Position numbers and translations under genes: made by a program. The notes under the pieces were generated by a model. The model was not told the DNA's origin. It searched no databases and was given only the letters and a program-made list of their open reading frames with translations. A stretch of 64,000 bases of DNA from Parasitella parasitica NRRL 2501 (Eukaryota > Fungi > Mucoromycota), in assembly GCA_025201805.1 (NCBI GenBank), contig MU619397.1, positions 1-64,000 of the forward strand, written 5' to 3'. This document shows positions 3,371 through 56,450 of the stretch, one piece after another (within the stretch, counting starts at the first letter, position 1; each line of letters begins with the position of its first letter).

Positions 3371-4082
3371 TTTACGAGGAAGAGAAGCAAAAAGTGCGTA
3401 TTTAGGGCAGGATACGTTTATAGCCAGAATCGCACAATCTCCGGCATAACAACTAATTTAGGCATCAGCCCTAAAAGATGTAAATGCAGACCTAAGGAAA
3501 ATGCGCTAAAGGTCACCTCTGTTCCAACATTTTGCCATCCTTCTATTTATGCCAATACTGGTATGTTTAAGCACGTACCATAGCGCCTCACTGATTTCGG
3601 AACGCCAACAGGGTTTATTGCTGACAAGATATTGCTGACAAGATATAGATTCTCGGCTTTATCAAATATTCTTGATTTGCACTACAAGATATTTGATCTT
3701 TATGTACGAATTTTATGGGGTGTGGATGTTGAGATAAATGAAAAAGCTCGTCATTTTCCAATATATAGCGTATAAATCACGCCAAATCTACACGAAATTG
3801 AACTTGTGAATGTTTCTATAAGGTATAATAGCAACCAATGACAGTAAAAGACTTTTTAACAGAGCTCTAATCACCATTAAAAATGGCAATTATATGCATC
3901 TACTCAATGATACACATGTACAATTGCAGCGTGAGTCAAGAAAAAAAAAAAGCTGGCAGATTGAGCAAGATAAGATATTTTGCTTGATTGTAGTGCGTAT
4001 AGAAATAAAAGTTAGTAATTTCATCGCTTCCATCAGCCTTTTTACTCTCTTTTCTTTCCATAATCTTTGAGGCATCCCCGTC

Positions 4083-5400
4083 ATGAGCTCTCAACAAACT
4101 TTTCCTATCGACAATGAGCTGTTCCAATTCTATATTCATTACCAATTACGCCTAGTCAGGAAAAGCATGTTGTTATGGGGTGATAATAGCGAAAAGGATA
4201 TTATTGTCAATATCTTGAATAATTGTCAGCATGTCGAAGGAAGTACGGCAACATATAAAGCAACACACACAGATAACCTAATTTTACTTTAAAAATAGAC
4301 ACGCTGCGTACAATTATTAACGAAATATTCGATAATTCAATTCTCAAGCGTACTCATCACAAAGACAAAAGTCAAAAAACTACTGACGACGTAGTCGTAT
4401 TCAACGGAAGGAACACAAACACCAAACAATCAGCAGTGTCTACTGATGAAGACGGTGAACCGTTATATCTTGATTCGAGTCATGAAGAGCCTAGAATCAA
4501 AAAAGCCAAAACTTCAATTACAAGTACGCAAACGTCTACCAAATTTAAAATGGAAAATTCAAAAGGTAAAAGAGAAATCTCCAAACTTCTTGAAAGGGTC
4601 TTGAACCAAGATGCTTCCAAAGGTTTGTACATCGAGCCATTAAATCATAAGAAATTTGCCAACTTGACATTTTGAGCCTATTAGAAATAAATTGTATGGT
4701 TAAATATAAAGAAAGAAGCAGATATGTATTCCACACCAGAATGAAAACCTTGCGCGACAGTTTCAAAATCAATTATACATTTCCTGGAGAAAATTCCTCT
4801 CCTAGCACACCCAACTGCACATTTGAGGTGTTCAAATTGTTCGACAATAGAAGCATTTTAGGTCAATGTCAACTTAACCTTACGTCGTATCGACTTGGAA
4901 AGCTAAGAGAAAAAGAGGAGCAAGTGTTGCCAATTACGACAGTTCGAAACAACTATGAAAAGTACCACAGCTCTTTGAGGGGTATGTATCATTTGGAATA
5001 AAATCACTATGTCTATTCAATCTTTGTCTATTGAAGAAAGCTTAGACAATCCGACATTGTCTTACCGCGAATACGCAAGGTATTGTAAAATACTTGTTAA
5101 GGTTGTTGAAAGACTTGGAGCGTACCCGCTTTTCTTCCCAGAGATATTGCCTCCTAGTACCTTCAAAAAGGTAATAATGCAGTGATTAGGGAATGTTTGA
5201 TATAGTCATTAAAATCTGACTAGGTGGCTCAAGATGATTTCAGCAAGATTCAAGACTATTTTGACGAGCTATTTTCAGAATTCAGGGACATTGCAAGATT
5301 TGACGACAACGATGATTTGATCTTGACAGAAAGTGCTGGGTCGAGCAACTACTCTGATGAAAAAGACGCATATCATAGCCGATTCTTGAAAAATGAATGA
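4083..5400 (+). CDS. Hypothetical protein, copy 1 of a tandem family (5 predicted exons)
   Basis: GT-AG introns join ORF pieces sharing IDNELFQFY, ERSxY, YRxGK, YAR, GxYxxFxPExL and SRFL blocks with the gene at 6166-7475, at equivalent intron positions. Confidence 0.7.
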
Positions 5401-5680
5401 AAAAAGAGATGGAAACAATAATATATTGAAGGCAGAGAGGCGTATCCATTCAGATATTTGTATTAGTATGCAAAACGCATCATTGATTTTACAATTTATC
5501 AACAATAAAAACAAAGAGTTATATCGCCTTTATAAAATGCATAGAGACTACTGAGCACCCAATGACCCTATTAAATACTTGAGTGGATTCTGTATTTTTA
5601 ACCTATTCGACCAGAAATCGAAATTTGAAGATGTGCAGTACATCCAAATCCAACATTCCCCTAGCCCCCCCCCTCTTCCT

Positions 5681-5715
<35 letters not shown>

Positions 5716-5725
5716 NNNNNNNNNN
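5716..5725. other. Assembly gap (also 7952-7961 and 13258-13277)
   Basis: Runs of n adjacent to long T/A homopolymers. Confidence 1.
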
Positions 5726-5835
5726 CACTAAGCAACAACTATAGCGCAAATTATACTTCCCTCAGTAATATAACCAAGAAGTTGGTTATCGTCAATATAT
5801 TAAATGAAATTAAAGATGCCAATGAAAGCAAGTAC
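5726..5835 (+). pseudogene. Partial third copy of the exon-1 end of the tandem family, next to an assembly gap
   Basis: Encodes KLVIVNILNEIKDANES, versus DIIVNILNNCQHVEG (copy 1) and AMLTILTEFENVDG (copy 2), and ends at a donor-like site. Confidence 0.35.
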
Positions 5836-6165
5836 CTCAAATCGTAAATAATCAAAAAATTAAGCTGTATTTAAAGCTAAGAGATCAACGCTTAAGAACT
5901 ACAAATGAACCTGATTATTCTGTGTCGTTATCACACTGGTAACATTTGACTTGACTAATAGTACCAGATAACCGCATTTGATTAATAGCGTGTATTCAAT
6001 ATCATTATTTTACGTATCTTGAAAAGCCTTTCTTACAGCTGTATCACATACAGTAAATATAGAACCTTCAGTCATTGTTTATAAACTTGAAATAAGAAAC
6101 GCGCCCCGTCTCCCAAAATCCCCTTTCTTTTTCTCTCTTATACCTTTACACACATTATATTCAAA

Positions 6166-7475
6166 ATGGCAATAAATGTCAAGAAAGAGCCTCCTACAGC
6201 TATTGACAACGAGCTGTTTCAGTTTTATACTCGATATCAAATGTGCCAAATAAAAAAGAGTACCTCTTTGTGGAATAACAGCAAGGAAAAAGAGGCTATG
6301 TTGACTATTCTCACAGAATTTGAAAATGTTGATGGCAGTAAGTTATATATGAATGTCATTCATACTCGTCTAACATTTTCTTATTAGACACTCTTCGTCT
6401 TATTGTAAACCAGATATTTGAGAATTCTATTCAAAAGTTTAATAATTCAGATAAAGAATCAGAAGGAATGAATGTAGACACTACTGTAATCCATTCAGCA
6501 CCAACGAACGAAACTGGAGCAACAAAGATGGAAGCTCTTGAAAGTAAGCAAGATAACTGTGAAGACGAGTTGGAAGAAGCAAGCACAAGCGATAGTCATG
6601 CCAAAAATATGATTTCAGTCGTACCATTAGTAGAGAATGAAGCGCCTATCATTGTTCCCAAGAACATACAAGAGATCTTGTCACTCCCATCAATTGAAGG
6701 TTTGTAGATCAAAATTTAGTTTGAATAATGGGCCTAATATTGCTTCCAGAAATCCAACACATGACAACCCATATTGAGCGAAGCAAATATATACTCTTGA
6801 AAAGAATGAGGGTTGTAGATGAAAGCTTCAAGTTCAAGGCATCAGCTCAAAATGCATCGTATACTGTTCGTGTGTATAACTTGTTAGGCAATTCCCGTAG
6901 TCCCTTATACCAAAGCCAATTGAATCTCATTGCTTATCGGTTTGGGAAAGTGGTTCAACATGAAACGCTTTATTCAAGTCAAAATGTAAAGGAAGTCGAA
7001 CGAAAATTATATGGCGATTTAATTCGTATGCACACTAGCACTATTTCTTGTACACGTTGCTCAAATTTTGTTCGTAGGAGAAATGAAAAAATTCGGAAGA
7101 AAATGGATTGCACCATATGCTAGATTCATCAGATATAGCGAGAAAGTAGTAAAAACTGTCGAAAAAATTGGCGTTTACGCTTGTTTTATTCCAGAAGTAC
7201 TGTCACCCTATGTATTACAAACTGTAAGTTATGCAAAATTTTCATATATGGCCTGACGCTAAATTTTTTATTGTTTTATGTGTACGTAGATTAGTCGAGA
7301 AAGGCTTCCTATTGTTCAGAAATATATTGACATGAGGTTTAGTCAGTTCAAATCTCTTGCTAAATACGAAACTGATGGAAAAATGATATTGACAAACTTG
7401 AAAACTTTGGGTAAAAATGTAAGCAAAAGAAATGAGGACTACAAGGAAAGTCGATTCTTGAATAGTTGCAACTGA
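6166..7475 (+). CDS. Hypothetical protein, copy 2 of a tandem family (5 predicted exons)
   Basis: MAINVKKEPPTAIDNELFQFYTRYQ...ESRFLNSCN*. Paralogous to 4083-5400 with the same intron layout. Confidence 0.7.
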
Positions 7476-52130: not shown

Positions 52131-52557
52131 ACAGTATCAAGATCTACTACACTAAAGAATCTCGGAGTCGTGGTATGAATAGATCTGGATCAGTTTTTTT
52201 TATGGAATTATTGCCAATTACTACAACAGCCGCCTACATTCAGGGAAATTGCTTTAATCATTGCCTAAAAGAGACTAACCGCTAGTAGACTATGAAATCT
52301 AAATACATTCTCATATCTTGTAATGCATCTTGGAGTCAATAATTACGTCGAGTTTGTCGACAACTTGAAATTTCCGGCAAATCAATTGGATTGTTTCTCT
52401 AATTTTGATGGATTTGCTGGTGGAACTATTACATCTGAATCCTCAAGGTATTCTCAGAAAACGCGGGACCTTAACCAATTTGAGTCAAGTTCTTTATAAA
52501 AGGTTCTTTTCTCGCCTATCATTGCTGATCTTTCTTTCGCTTTTTGTGTTGCTCGGA

Positions 52558-54087
52558 ATGGCTGAAAATAACATCAAGGGCATTTTATCTGAGTATGATA
52601 ACGAATCTGTTGTTACCAGGCAAGCAATTCACCGTGGTGGTCGAAAATCCATCTACATGGCCGGTGTTGTTGCTGCTGGAGGTGGATTTGTCGTTGGCTT
52701 TGATACAGGCGCTGTATCCGGTACCATGGTATTGCAGCCATTTATCGACAAATTCCTAAATGTGGATGCCACTTATCGCTCTGCTCTTTTGGTTGCCATG
52801 ATGTTATTAACTGCCACTATTGGTGGTTTAGCTTCCGGCAATGTATGTGGTAAGTATTTTGTGTAGCACACATCATATGTATATCAAACTAAGCTTGCTA
52901 TAGATTACATGGGTCGTAAAAATACAATTCTTCTTGGTACGAGTGTGTTTGGCATCGGCGCTCTTTTTGAAACAATCGGTTATAACTTTGGTTTACTCAT
53001 GGCCGGCCGTCTTTTTGTTGGTCTTGGTGAAGGTTTTTTGACCAATGCTATCCCACTTTACCACACCGAGATCGCTCCTCCCGACATTCGTGGTCGACTG
53101 ATCACTCTATTCAGTGCCATGTCATCTGTGGGCACTATTGTTGGTTATTTCGTCAACTTTGGCACTTCTTACCTTGGCAATGACTGGGCTTGGCGTACTC
53201 CATTTTTGGTTCAACTACTCGTTTGCATCTTTTTGCTGTCTGCGTATTTCTTGCCCTATTCTCCTCGTTGGCTCATCGATAAAGGCCGTAAAGAAGAAGC
53301 TTTGTTGGTCCTTGCTAAGCTCCATGAATCGACAGTTGAAGATCCCGAAGTTCGTAACGAATACCAATGTATTTGTGAAGAGATCCGAGTTGAACGTTCT
53401 TTTGGTACTCGTACCTACGTCGAGTGTTTCCGCGGCACTAATTTGAAGCGTACACTTTTTGCCTTATTCACTGGTAACGGTGCTGCGTTTACTGGTACTT
53501 ATTCCATCACTTACTATGCTCCTTCTATTTTTCAGCAAGCCGGGGTGGGGAGCACTTCCATTTCACTAGCTACGAGCGGCGCGAGCAACATTCTTGTCTT
53601 GATTGTCACCTTGTTGACAGTATTATTCATCGACCGTTTGGGTCGGCGTGGAATTTTTGCTTCTGGTGCTATTGTTATGGGTCTCTCCATGTACATTGTT
53701 GGCGGCCTCTTTCAAGGCTACAGTTTCATTGACGACGAAGGCAATGTTGGGCTATCAAACAAGCATGCTCAAGCTTGCGTTATCGCCTTTGTGTTTATTT
53801 TCCAAGCAGCTTATGCTTACAGTTGGGGGCCTGTTGCCTACATTTATCCTGCTGAAATCTCCAATATGCGTACTCGTGCTAAAGTTATTGCTCTTGCATA
53901 TGGCTTGAACTGGGCGATCGGTATCTTTATGACGTTTGTCATGCCAATCTTTATGAACAACACCATCTATGGCGGCTATTACTTTTTCGGTGCCTGCTGT
54001 AGCATCCTCTCTATCGGCAGTTTCTGGCTCCCAGAAACTAAAGGAAAAACTTTGGAGGAAATTGATCGCATGTTTAATCCTCTCTAG
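52558..54087 (+). CDS. MFS sugar-porter family transporter with atypical binding site; predicted thiamine/precursor transporter
   Basis: GFDTG, GRK, PLYHTEIAPPDIRGRL, PYSPRWL, IDRLGRR and PETKGKTLEEID; one intron at about 52850-52903. The substrate is inferred from the linked TPP riboswitch. Confidence 0.9.
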
Positions 54088-54304
54088 CGTTGAAACGGGT
54101 ATATTTCTTTTATCTCAATCAATCATACTAACCAAACTATCTTTAAAATAAACATTCGCCATAGTTGTCCTGCCCCCCGCCTCTGGTCCTCACCGGGTCT
54201 CTGGTCATTTAGCTGTGGACTACTGCTTACTCTTTTCGGTCTTATGGTGGGGATCCATGCGTTGGGATGGTAACTTGCTATTCTTTCAATTGTACTAAAA
54301 AAAA

Positions 54305-54393
54305 GGACAATCGAGGGGTGCTAGACCTAACGGTCGGCTGAGATTATACCCTTAAGAGCGGACCATGTTAATGCATGCGACGGCCACGAGTTC
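54305..54393 (+). promoter_or_regulatory. TPP (THI-box) riboswitch aptamer in a predicted 3' UTR intron
   Basis: P1 GGAC..TCG/CGAGTTC; P2 AGGG/CCCT; P3 GCT-GACC[TAAC]GGTC-GGC; conserved CTGAGA and ATACCC; P4 CG/CG; P5 CATG[TTAATG]CATG followed by CG. Confidence 0.92.
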
Positions 54394-54720
54394 CCATTTG
54401 TACAATTGCTTTTTTTCTCATTTTTATGCCAGGTAACGTATCATCTTGCTACACATTCTCTCTGCGCTTCCACATATAGTTGGTGGTCTTTGTTTGCTTG
54501 ACCATTGTTTTTGAATTTGGCATTTGGCATTTGACAATTGACATTTGGGCTTGTCCTAATCTCATGCTCTTATGGTATCTCTCGTTGGGATCCTTGTTTA
54601 TAGTTGCTGTTGGTCGTATCAGCATGTGTGTTTGTGTGTGTTTCTCAATAAAAGTTGTGATTTTCCAGTGGTTTTTTTATTATAAATAGTGGTTTATTAA
54701 ATGACGAATAAGTTACTATT

Positions 54721-56450
54721 CTAATTGTTTTTGATGGACGGACAAGAGTTTGTTCGTAAATTGACATTCTTTGGTGCAAAACCTTGCTCCCAAGCCAGTA
54801 AATAATCCCAATGAGGGTTGACATGATCTTCAGTCTTGTAAGTCCAATAAAACCATCCTATACCAGCTTCATAGGCATCCATTTGCTTCTCCATGAATTG
54901 CAACAAGAAATTTTTGTATTCAGGTGTAAACGCTGTCCAGTCGTCGACACCAACACATGAGCATGTTGGACACACAGGCGCTGTTGGTGCTCCTTCTTGC
55001 TCAAGAGTCCCGTCAAATCGAGCGCCCAATCCTACGCCATTCAGATATTTGGCACAATCATTTGTAGCGACAGAAAATTCGCCCACCATCGTAGGACCCA
55101 CATGGATAGACGCTTCCCCAATGTCTTTTTTCCATGCTGTACAGGGAAACTCTGATTGCTGGGTTCTGGGCATCGATACAAGGCCATTATTAAAGATCAT
55201 GTATAAATGAGTTTCCAAAATAACGCGTTCGTATTGCTTTCCAAAAAAGCCATTCCATGCACTAAGAGGGAAGAAACCATCGTGGTAAGTTAACAGGGGG
55301 CCACGACCAGGACCGAGCAATTTGCGGATAGCATTGTAGCTTTTTTGATACCAATTTTTAACCTTGACAGCAGGGATTTTCATCATCGCAGGTTCATTCA
55401 AGACGCCAAATAAAGGGACAACGTTAGACCACTCGGGTTTATCAAAGAATCTTATCATTTCAGTTGCAATTTGAAGAGTTCTATCGCCATTGGACTCGCC
55501 CTCGGTACCGTTCAAGAAGCCGACCATGCCTGATTTACCAGAGTGATTCCAGCCATTTTGTGACCCAGGAGCAGTATGCAATTCTACCATGACACGGAGC
55601 CCATACTTTCTAGCCCACTGAATACCTTGTAGCAAGTATTGCCAGGAGATAAATGGAACATACGGCTCATCAGATAAAACTTGAACTGCCCAATGTCCTG
55701 TAGGGATACGAACATGATTGAATCCCATTTCGGCGATCCTCTTGAAATCGGCTTCCGTTACAAACGTATCATAATGATTTTGTAATTGCCTCTTGGCTTC
55801 CTCGGGTCCCAGTTTCTCGCATAGACTCCATTCGTCGACTACTGTTTGATTTGGACCAAATTGTTCGAATATTTTTGGCGTAATAAAGGGCTCAAGTACA
55901 AGCCATCCGCCTAAATTAATGCCACGGATACGATCCTCGGCGTTGTACCGAAAAGGCTTGTTGAGGGCAGGAGTGAAATTATGGGCTTGAACTGAATCAT
56001 CAAAAGGATCTTTGTAGTCTGGCGATCCAGGTGTAATAAGGTGAGGATTGCTGCCTGGATTGTTACGGGATGATCTTTGCTGATGCTCATCTTTTGCACT
56101 AATGCCAAAGACGACCAGTGGGATGACAATTGCAGCCAAAACGAGCAATGTTATAGACGTTACAAGTAATGCCACTCTAGTTTTGTTTGACTTGAATTTT
56201 CCCCATAATGTGGTGGGAGCAGAAGGAGGATTAACACCGCCAGGAACACTAGAATGTGTTTGATGTGTCGAAGTATTCGCCTTGATTTTCTCATCAATGT
56301 CAATGTGATTGATGCTTGGCTCTCTTGATAAAGCCCAACTCACTGGATCTGCTTGTTGCTTGTAATAGCTCTCTTGTGAGTTTATATCTATGGTGGTAGT
56401 ATTAATGTTTATATTCAGTCCACATATATAAAACTATGCATACTTTGCAT
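54721..56450 (-). CDS. GH5 glucan 1,3-beta-glucosidase with N-terminal TM anchor (ExgD-like)
   Basis: RGINLGGWLVLEPFITP, NHVRIPTGHWA, HTAPGSQNGWNHSG, LNEP (acid/base), VGEFS (nucleophile) and GWFYWTYK. A tiny first exon at 56450 is inferred. Confidence 0.92.

Follow-up and report, generated by a model that had tools for sequence, protein, structure and literature searches.

The window analysed here is a stretch of 64,000 nucleotides (nt) of Parasitella parasitica NRRL 2501 (Mucoromycota), positions 1 to 64,000 of contig MU619397.1. Its forward strand holds a sugar-porter gene and, within the 3' untranslated region (UTR) of that gene, an aptamer for thiamine pyrophosphate (TPP); a convergent GH5 glycosidase gene follows on the reverse strand (Table 1). 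The aptamer belongs to the 3' UTR of this mRNA and is transcribed with it. Judged from its conservation, it is very probably a real riboswitch in this 3' UTR, with TPP binding and function predicted. Placement of TPP riboswitches in 3' UTRs has so far been a feature of plants and algae and, to our knowledge, the fungal TPP riboswitches studied experimentally all lie in introns near the 5' end. An earlier sequence-only reading of the window had proposed a complete aptamer in the 3' UTR of a sugar-porter gene of a Mucorales fungus, together with a helix that hides a 5' splice site in the manner of the plant THIC switch. The aptamer and its location are borne out below, and the splice-site-masking switch is not.

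A TPP aptamer within the porter mRNA

The porter has 491 amino acids (97 + 394 codons), the length of its orthologs, and its stop codon is taken as genuine because the C-terminus EEIDRMFNP[LIM] is conserved among them. All protein searches were run with exon 2 alone (window 52909-54084); it shares 97% identity with Parasitella parasitica and 96% with Mucor fragilis. A contig from a public RNA run, with zero differences from the window DNA, has the coding intron removed at a GT..AG joint skipping 54 nt and is therefore mRNA-derived. It is continuous from 52903 to 54668, passing through the aptamer with no joint before it enters Illumina adapter, and 54668 is a plausible poly(A) site because of the AATAAA at 54647-54652. 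A second transcript, Logan contig L016 of an M. hiemalis-like paralog, contains an intron-free open reading frame (ORF) of 508 amino acids, then the stop codon, an AATAAA and the aptamer, into which it runs unspliced. The RNA run is stored as contigs, which cannot show expression level, rare isoforms or use of a proximal poly(A) site.

The porter 5' UTR is at least 331 nt long (52227-52557 in the RNA contig) and gave no Rfam match, and no TPP aptamer was found by Rfam upstream of the porter between 50500 and 53000, a region that covers the 5' region and the coding intron. A published survey lists aptamers of this kind as 5'-UTR elements under Type I regulation (PMC11683625), from which the present one might be taken for the 5' leader of a downstream gene, or for an independent RNA. 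This is scarcely credible, given that the next gene is convergent on the opposite strand, that the genes downstream change from species to species, in identity as in strand, with the porter constantly upstream of the aptamer, that a single mRNA contig joins coding region and aptamer in two species, and that no aptamer precedes the porter.

The aptamer aligns to positions 1-105 of the 105 of the RF00059 model at 36.7 bits (E 1.7e-5, in a 701-nt search in E-value mode) and begins 216 nt past the stop codon, which ends at 54087; the sequence-only reading had put the distance at about 220 nt. Its motifs are CTGAGA at 54338-54343 (J3/2), ACCCTT at 54348 (with the ACCC of P2) and the P5 loop TTAATG at 54368, followed by GCG after P5. 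The architecture, P1-P5 without P3a, is the eukaryotic form of the TPP aptamer. The Rfam search that the sequence-only reading had suggested as a check thus gave a divided answer. The match is full length, and its score does not reach the RF00059 gathering score of 54.3 bits, so that a scan of the window at default cut-offs returned 0 matches and the aptamer was found in E-value mode only. The low score is due in part to the absence of P3a and to an extra G (54356 or 54357) in the 3' strand of P4, which reads CGGC in the window and M. fragilis and CGC in the other orthologs. When the whole 32.8-Mb genome was scanned with RF00059, only two other places outscored the window, at 50.8 and 48.8 bits; since both also fall below 54.3 bits, the cut-off is strict for this lineage. 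Other sub-threshold Rfam matches in the window (bxd_4, DUF805b, snoRNAs) were set aside as chance.

Conservation and covariation of the aptamer

The DNA around 10 orthologs (60-96% protein identity) and one paralog was compared with the window. A sense-strand RF00059 match lies 100-810 nt past the stop codon in nine of the ten orthologs, from the Mucorales and Basidiobolus (M. fragilis, Choanephora, R. stolonifer, Thamnidium, Basidiobolus, Phycomyces, Absidia, Cunninghamella and Halteromyces). The R. stolonifer match exceeds the cut-off at 57.8 bits and the others score 32-52 bits, M. fragilis being at 32. The paralog clade also carries the aptamer, both in M. circinelloides and in this genome's own paralog (contig C48); M. 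lusitanicus (M. circinelloides f. lusitanicus) possesses the two porter paralogs. Alone among the ten, the ortholog of Hesseltinella vesiculosa (4196-6696) lacked a TPP match at E <= 10; the C-terminus of this porter is extended and unrelated to EEIDRMFNP. The aptamer of Phycomyces blakesleeanus (4058-5016 region) lies 809 nt past the annotated stop and is 149 nt long through an A-rich P3 insertion.

In a 12-locus alignment, 90% of cells form standard pairs, as against 27-51% when the partners are slid. Seven pairs have changed on both sides, and P1, P4 and P5 covary, P4 having a G-C to A-U replacement and P5 occurring in U-A, G-C and A-U variants. The observed covariation score was reached by 0 of 500 shuffles, and RNAalifold recovered P2, P3, P4 and P5 from the alignment. 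The segments GGGGTGC, GGCTGAGA, ACCCTT and CTGCG, which include the TPP-contact motifs CUGAGA, ACCC and GCG, are invariant in the 12 loci. By these comparative measures, 54304-54403 is a genuine TPP aptamer under selection.

The Basidiobolus meristosporus ortholog (MCFE01000400.1, 3973-4500) is 71% identical, closer than several Mucorales orthologs, and its 3' aptamer scores 51.9 bits. Together with the 10-mer TAATAAATCC, found after the stop codon and identical in Choanephora and Basidiobolus, this ortholog points to conservation of great depth or else to gene transfer between the two phyla. A metagenome scan for further porter relatives gave only proteins of at most 34% identity and one 47% partial match.

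Other TPP aptamers of the genome

The two places that outscore the window both lie behind coding sequences. The 50.8-bit match adjoins THI4 (contig C95:7694-10801, minus strand, aptamer at 1501-1608), about 100 nt past the stop codon; the protein matches Pfam Thi4 at E 5e-98 and ends in RQAEQEKA. The 48.8-bit match (contig C48:56106-59229, minus strand, aptamer at 1501-1624) is 259 nt past the stop codon of the paralogous sugar porter, which is about 50% identical to the window porter and ends in EEMEYVFGAK. All three convincing TPP aptamers of the genome are therefore 3' of stop codons. At the paralog stop codon the sequence AA/GTAAYA (a slash marks the would-be splice joint here and below) was considered as a site where splicing might give alternative C-termini; this was rejected, as all database proteins end normally. 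A fourth, weak RF00059 match (contig C8:303500-303593, 21.7 bits, E 0.9) has no recognisable gene adjoining it. Because Pfam NMT1 gave one weak match only in the genome (contig C65, 23 bits), a riboswitch-controlled NMT1 may be absent.

Features of the 3' UTR

The coordinates of the gene, the aptamer and the surrounding signals are collected in Table 1.

Table 1. Features of the porter locus (window coordinates)
Feature	Position	Strand	Observation
Transporter exon 1, 97 codons, starts MAENNIKG	52558-52848	+	ORF list; RNA contig joins 52848 to 52903
Sole coding-region intron, 54 nt, GTAAGT...CTAAG...TAG	52849-52902	+	GT..AG joint in RNA contig
Transporter exon 2 and stop TAG (54085-54087), Sugar_tr family	52903-54087	+	Pfam PF00083, E 1.8e-81
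3' UTR, 581 nt, one transcribed piece with the coding region	54088-54668	+	RNA contig
Intron-like stretch GTATAT...TACTAAC (54126)...AATAAA...ATAG	54099-54163	+	Retained in RNA contig
Proximal AATAAA, 60 nt past stop	54147-54152	+	
Conserved block CGCCTCTGGTCCTC	54178-54191	+	
Proposed masking strand	54256-54271	+	Only first part, (C/T)ATGCGTTGG, conserved
Candidate 5' splice site GTAACT	54270-54275	+	Reads GCAATT in M. fragilis; use not observed in RNA contig
Closing helix, 5' strand CAATTGTAC	54287-54295	+	9 bp with 54400-54408
TPP aptamer (P1-P5, no P3a)	54304-54403	+	RF00059 36.7 bits, full length; covariation, 12 loci
P5 hairpin CATG/TTAATG/CATG, target of proposed masking helix	54362-54377	+	
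Closing helix, 3' strand GTACAATTG	54400-54408	+	G(T)ACAAT motif kept in most orthologs
Splice-site-like motif CAG/GTAACGTAT after pyrimidine tract	54430-54441	+	Not spliced in RNA contig
TTGGTGG, 3' arm of downstream stem	54480-54486	+	5' arm CCACCAAC missing in window
Distal conserved blocks ACATTTGGGCTTGTCC and CTCGTTGGGATCCTTG, within 124-nt AG-free zone	54541-54598	+	
Distal AATAAA	54647-54652	+	Transcript contig ends 16 nt later
GH5 glycosidase gene, convergent	54721-56343	-	Own RNA contig 54735-56387

Upstream of the aptamer, an AATAAA occurs 30-130 nt past the stop codon in nearly all loci. In Mucor and Thamnidium it stands within an intron-like GTATAY...TACTAAC...YAG unit, and the GTATAY/CTAAC/YAG layout after the stop is found in M. 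fragilis and Thamnidium as in the window. The conserved block at 54178-54191 takes the form CGCCTCTGG(T/A)TCTC in M. fragilis, R. stolonifer and Thamnidium, with a weaker variant, TGCTCTGGTCTG, in Choanephora. The YATGCG block is conserved in five related genera, and (C/T)ATGCGTTGG is preceded by a copy of the locus's own P1 5' strand (AGGAC in Thamnidium, AGAAC in R. stolonifer). Outside P1, every species is predicted to form a closing helix of 7-20 bp, whose arm sequences differ by lineage; in the window it has 9 bp without a mismatch. The 3' strand of this helix contains an AATAAA in Cunninghamella and Halteromyces.

Downstream of the aptamer, the best conserved splice-like signal is YAG/GTAAKGTAT. 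It occurs 30-100 nt past the aptamer in M. fragilis, Thamnidium and Choanephora, and similar motifs are present in R. stolonifer, M. circinelloides and Basidiobolus. A 10-bp stem, CCACCAACC/GGTTGGTGG, surrounds the GTAAKG motif in the minimum-free-energy (MFE) folds of M. fragilis, R. stolonifer and Thamnidium; the paralog stem uses GGAGCCAA/TTGGCTCC, so that the structure is kept with entirely different arm sequences. Downstream stems of 10-12 bp are seen at L005 4366-4500, L007 4301-4382, L008 4453-4602 and L015 4423-4561 of the compared loci. Relative to M. fragilis, about 55 nt including CCACCAAC are missing from the window, and the 5' arm of the stem is lost with them. Beyond the motif comes a long stretch free of AG (p 0.02-0.09 in three species), which runs up to a YAG with a pyrimidine tract; AG sites with such tracts are conserved downstream of the aptamer. 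In Basidiobolus, a canonical GTAAGT...CTAAC...TAG unit follows the aptamer.

The convergent mRNA contigs are separated by a 66-nt gap (54669-54734) between the porter contig end at 54668 and the GH5 contig start at 54735. The GH5 RNA contig ends 12 nt short of the GH5 stop codon.

The proposed splice-site-masking helix

In the exact THIC-like model put forward by the sequence-only reading, 54256-54271 pairs with 54362-54377 when TPP is absent and hides the donor at 54270; TPP would free the donor, and an intron at 54270-54432 would be removed. The pairing itself was correctly counted: 15 of 16 positions pair, three as G-U, with a single G-G mismatch, and the GT at 54270-54271 is covered. The helix is present in the MFE structure of 54236-54445 and has a duplex-energy p of about 0.017. 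A pyrimidine tract and CAG stand at 54430-54432 in the place of the acceptor, the YATGCG block is kept in the five related genera, and R. stolonifer has a canonical GC/GTAAGA at that block. Against this, when the upstream UTR was shuffled with its dinucleotides kept, 12 of 300 sequences (4%) gave a match of at least 15/16, and the MFE of 54236-54445 is no more stable than that of shuffles (z 0.03). The masking helix is thus real as sequence and only marginally beyond chance.

The comparison among species also speaks against this model. M. fragilis, whose protein is 96% identical, has GGCAAT in place of GGTAAC, so that this closest relative has no donor GT and keeps just the first 10 masking pairs. 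In Thamnidium a loop G of the aptamer has become A with no compensating change upstream. When the upstream block and aptamer were folded together for eight other loci (M. fragilis, Choanephora, R. stolonifer, Basidiobolus, Absidia, Cunninghamella and both paralogs, that is, seven other species and the genome's own paralog), all gave the canonical aptamer with a long closing helix and no mask. Thamnidium is a partial exception only, its upstream block pairing with the 3' side of the aptamer in the MFE structure. The aptamer is conserved and covarying, and the masking helix, for which the sequence-only reading had asked for the same conservation, is not.

By eye, a segment complementary to P5 seemed to stand beside a GT in each lineage; this candidate was rejected by a formal test over 13 loci, which gave a combined p of 0.19 for a mask beside a donor-like GT, and at 0 of 13 loci did the segment pair better with its own P4/P5 arm than with foreign arms. 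Complementarity of the P4/P5 arm to a 5' splice site is thus a feature of the window and is not conserved. Searches for long duplexes joining the upstream UTR to the aptamer arm were dominated by loose GC-rich pairings and were significant for the window and Basidiobolus only. A pairing of GGGTATA, at the donor-like 54096-54102, with the aptamer TATACCC was rejected as chance, M. fragilis having no compensation for it, and a 9-codon ORF at 54245-54274 is not conserved.

Two further points bear on the model. The spliced form it predicts is seen in neither of the two assembled transcripts. Moreover, the resemblance to THIC holds for the 3'-UTR placement and fails in the layout: because the proximal AATAAA at 54147 is upstream of the donor at 54270, the proposed intron would not remove the proximal poly(A) signal as the THIC intron does. 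We regard this specific model as improbable.

Possible modes of action

Our preferred reading is that a functional TPP riboswitch in the 581-nt 3' UTR acts through TPP-dependent splicing of that UTR; we hold it tentatively, at a little under an even chance. Action of the 3'-UTR riboswitch through splicing is likewise plausible, if somewhat more doubtful than probable from the signals in the DNA. The element would be an OFF switch acting on 3'-end maturation of the porter pre-mRNA, with one or more introns of the 3' UTR spliced in dependence on TPP. Candidate splice signals flank the aptamer, and of these CAG/GTAACGTAT is conserved. A junction formed over 50 nt beyond the stop codon could send the mRNA to nonsense-mediated decay, which would explain why only the unspliced form was assembled; alternatively, splicing could shift use between the two conserved poly(A) signals (54147 and 54647). 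The unspliced RNA contigs would, on this view, represent the form expressed at low TPP. We lean to splicing because all eukaryotic TPP riboswitches so far tested use it (PMC3597705) and because splice-like signals and AG-free zones flank the aptamer.

Several observations weigh against a splicing switch. No spliced 3'-UTR isoform is present in the two assembled transcripts, although contigs drop rare forms and absence is therefore not proven. Upstream of the aptamer, the splice-like signals do not keep a conserved position, and the test for a mask beside a donor-like GT was not significant. The window lacks the 5' arm of the downstream stem kept in relatives, and its P4 has a bulged G. Finally, THI4 of the same genome has about 26 nt between its aptamer and TATATT...AATAAA and shows no clear splice sites, a layout that fits a poly(A)-based mechanism better.

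Such a mechanism would be a choice of poly(A) site without splicing, in which TPP stabilises P1 and the long closing helix and so alters access to the 3'-end processing signals, shifting use between the proximal AATAAA (54147), whose mRNA would be short, stable and free of the aptamer, and the distal one (54647), which gives the long UTR. In every locus the order is proximal AATAAA, aptamer and distal AATAAA, the last 190-320 nt later. The identity of TAATAAATCC in Choanephora and Basidiobolus, the AATAAA within the closing-helix 3' strand of the two basal genera Cunninghamella and Halteromyces, the THI4 layout and the sight of unspliced transcripts only are all in keeping with this idea. AATAAA is, however, common in AT-rich UTRs, and contig depth cannot show use of the proximal site. 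A long-range contact would be needed, because the proximal signal lies 150 nt upstream of the aptamer, and no conserved one was found. We also know of no eukaryotic riboswitch that acts by poly(A) choice without splicing, which counts against it. On balance we consider this choice of site a serious alternative, if rather unlikely. Less likely still is its generalisation, by which all TPP riboswitches of the Mucorales and Basidiobolus (THI4 and the two porter paralogs) would be in 3' UTRs and would act without splicing, the closing of P1/P0 controlling poly(A)-site use or read-through. If true, no eukaryotic riboswitch described so far would have an expression platform of this type.

The lost stem arm and the P4 bulge also raise the question of whether the riboswitch, real in the family, has been disabled in this copy, which would then be decaying or inert. 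The lowest RF00059 scores of the family are those of the window (36.7 bits) and M. fragilis (32 bits), P4 has its extra G, and the window is missing the roughly 55 nt with CCACCAAC that M. fragilis has. All ligand-contact motifs are nevertheless intact, the P4 bulge, being common to two species, has been kept, the 9-bp closing helix has no mismatch and the distal conserved blocks are retained; loss of regulation is accordingly very unlikely. Through the riboswitch link alone, the porter is presumably an importer of thiamine or of a thiamine precursor.

Comparison with known systems

The aptamer group is not unreported, a point that the sequence-only reading had left unconfirmed, because PMC11683625 (ACS Omega 2024) named it 'TPPsw-SUGAR', a set of 43 aptamers adjoining sugar transporters, mostly in Mucoromycota. 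The orthologs and paralogs studied here agree with that description in having a TPP aptamer adjoining a Sugar_tr gene in Mucoromycota, and the R. arrhizus sequence of its supplement is, by eye, nearly identical to the R. stolonifer ortholog. That paper states the TPPsw-SUGAR and Mucor THI4 aptamers to be in 5' UTRs, with Type I regulation (an upstream ORF and an alternative 5' splice site), and on this assumption proposes the former as antifungal targets in agents of mucormycosis. Here, in contrast, the aptamer is on the sense strand past the stop codon in every aptamer locus examined, and within the 3' UTR in two transcripts. The fungal Type I (NMT1-like) arrangement, an aptamer in a 5'-UTR intron with an upstream ORF and two 5' splice sites, does not describe an aptamer past the stop. 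Literature searches on a 3'-UTR location in Mucorales found nothing. Mukherjee 2018 (PMC5882874) mentions 3'-UTR matches only for an eIF5B gene in Postia, and Moldovan 2018, as cited in PMC5997356, gives five riboswitch gene groups with no sugar porter among them.

The 3'-UTR placement, which holds across the Mucorales and Basidiobolus with two transcripts in support, corrects the sole published description. Mucor is transformable and would offer a tractable fungal system for riboswitch control from the 3' end, and two paralogous "sugar" porters are marked as likely vitamin-B1-related transporters.

Diatoms and marine algae also have TPP aptamers in 3' UTRs of thiamine-related genes, transporters among them (PMC4260697; bioRxiv 10.1101/2022.01.04.474978). 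They belong to another lineage and the diatom elements showed no thiamine regulation when tested; placement alone is therefore no proof of function. The Neurospora switches of NMT1, THI4 and NCU01977 (Cheah 2007; Li & Breaker 2013, PMC3597705) share the aptamer class and a fungal host, and NCU01977/DUR31 is likewise a transporter. They are intronic near the 5' end and act via upstream ORFs or broken reading frames, whereas here the coding sequence is untouched. The upstream block (AGGAC/AGAAC + YATGCG) resembles the P1 5' strand of the aptamer and recalls the alpha-alpha' long-range pairing of NCU01977 (PMC3597705).

Plant THIC and ancient-plant THI1 (Wachter 2007, as outlined in PMC3597705) provide the other comparison. 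The porter differs from THIC in being a transporter rather than a biosynthetic enzyme, in the unconserved masked donor, in a proximal AATAAA outside the proposed intron and in the sight of unspliced contigs only, and the complementarity of the P4/P5 arm to a GT is shared with THIC in the window species only. What the two systems have in common is a 3'-UTR aptamer placed between a proximal processing signal and distal ends, and the expected behaviour of an OFF switch.

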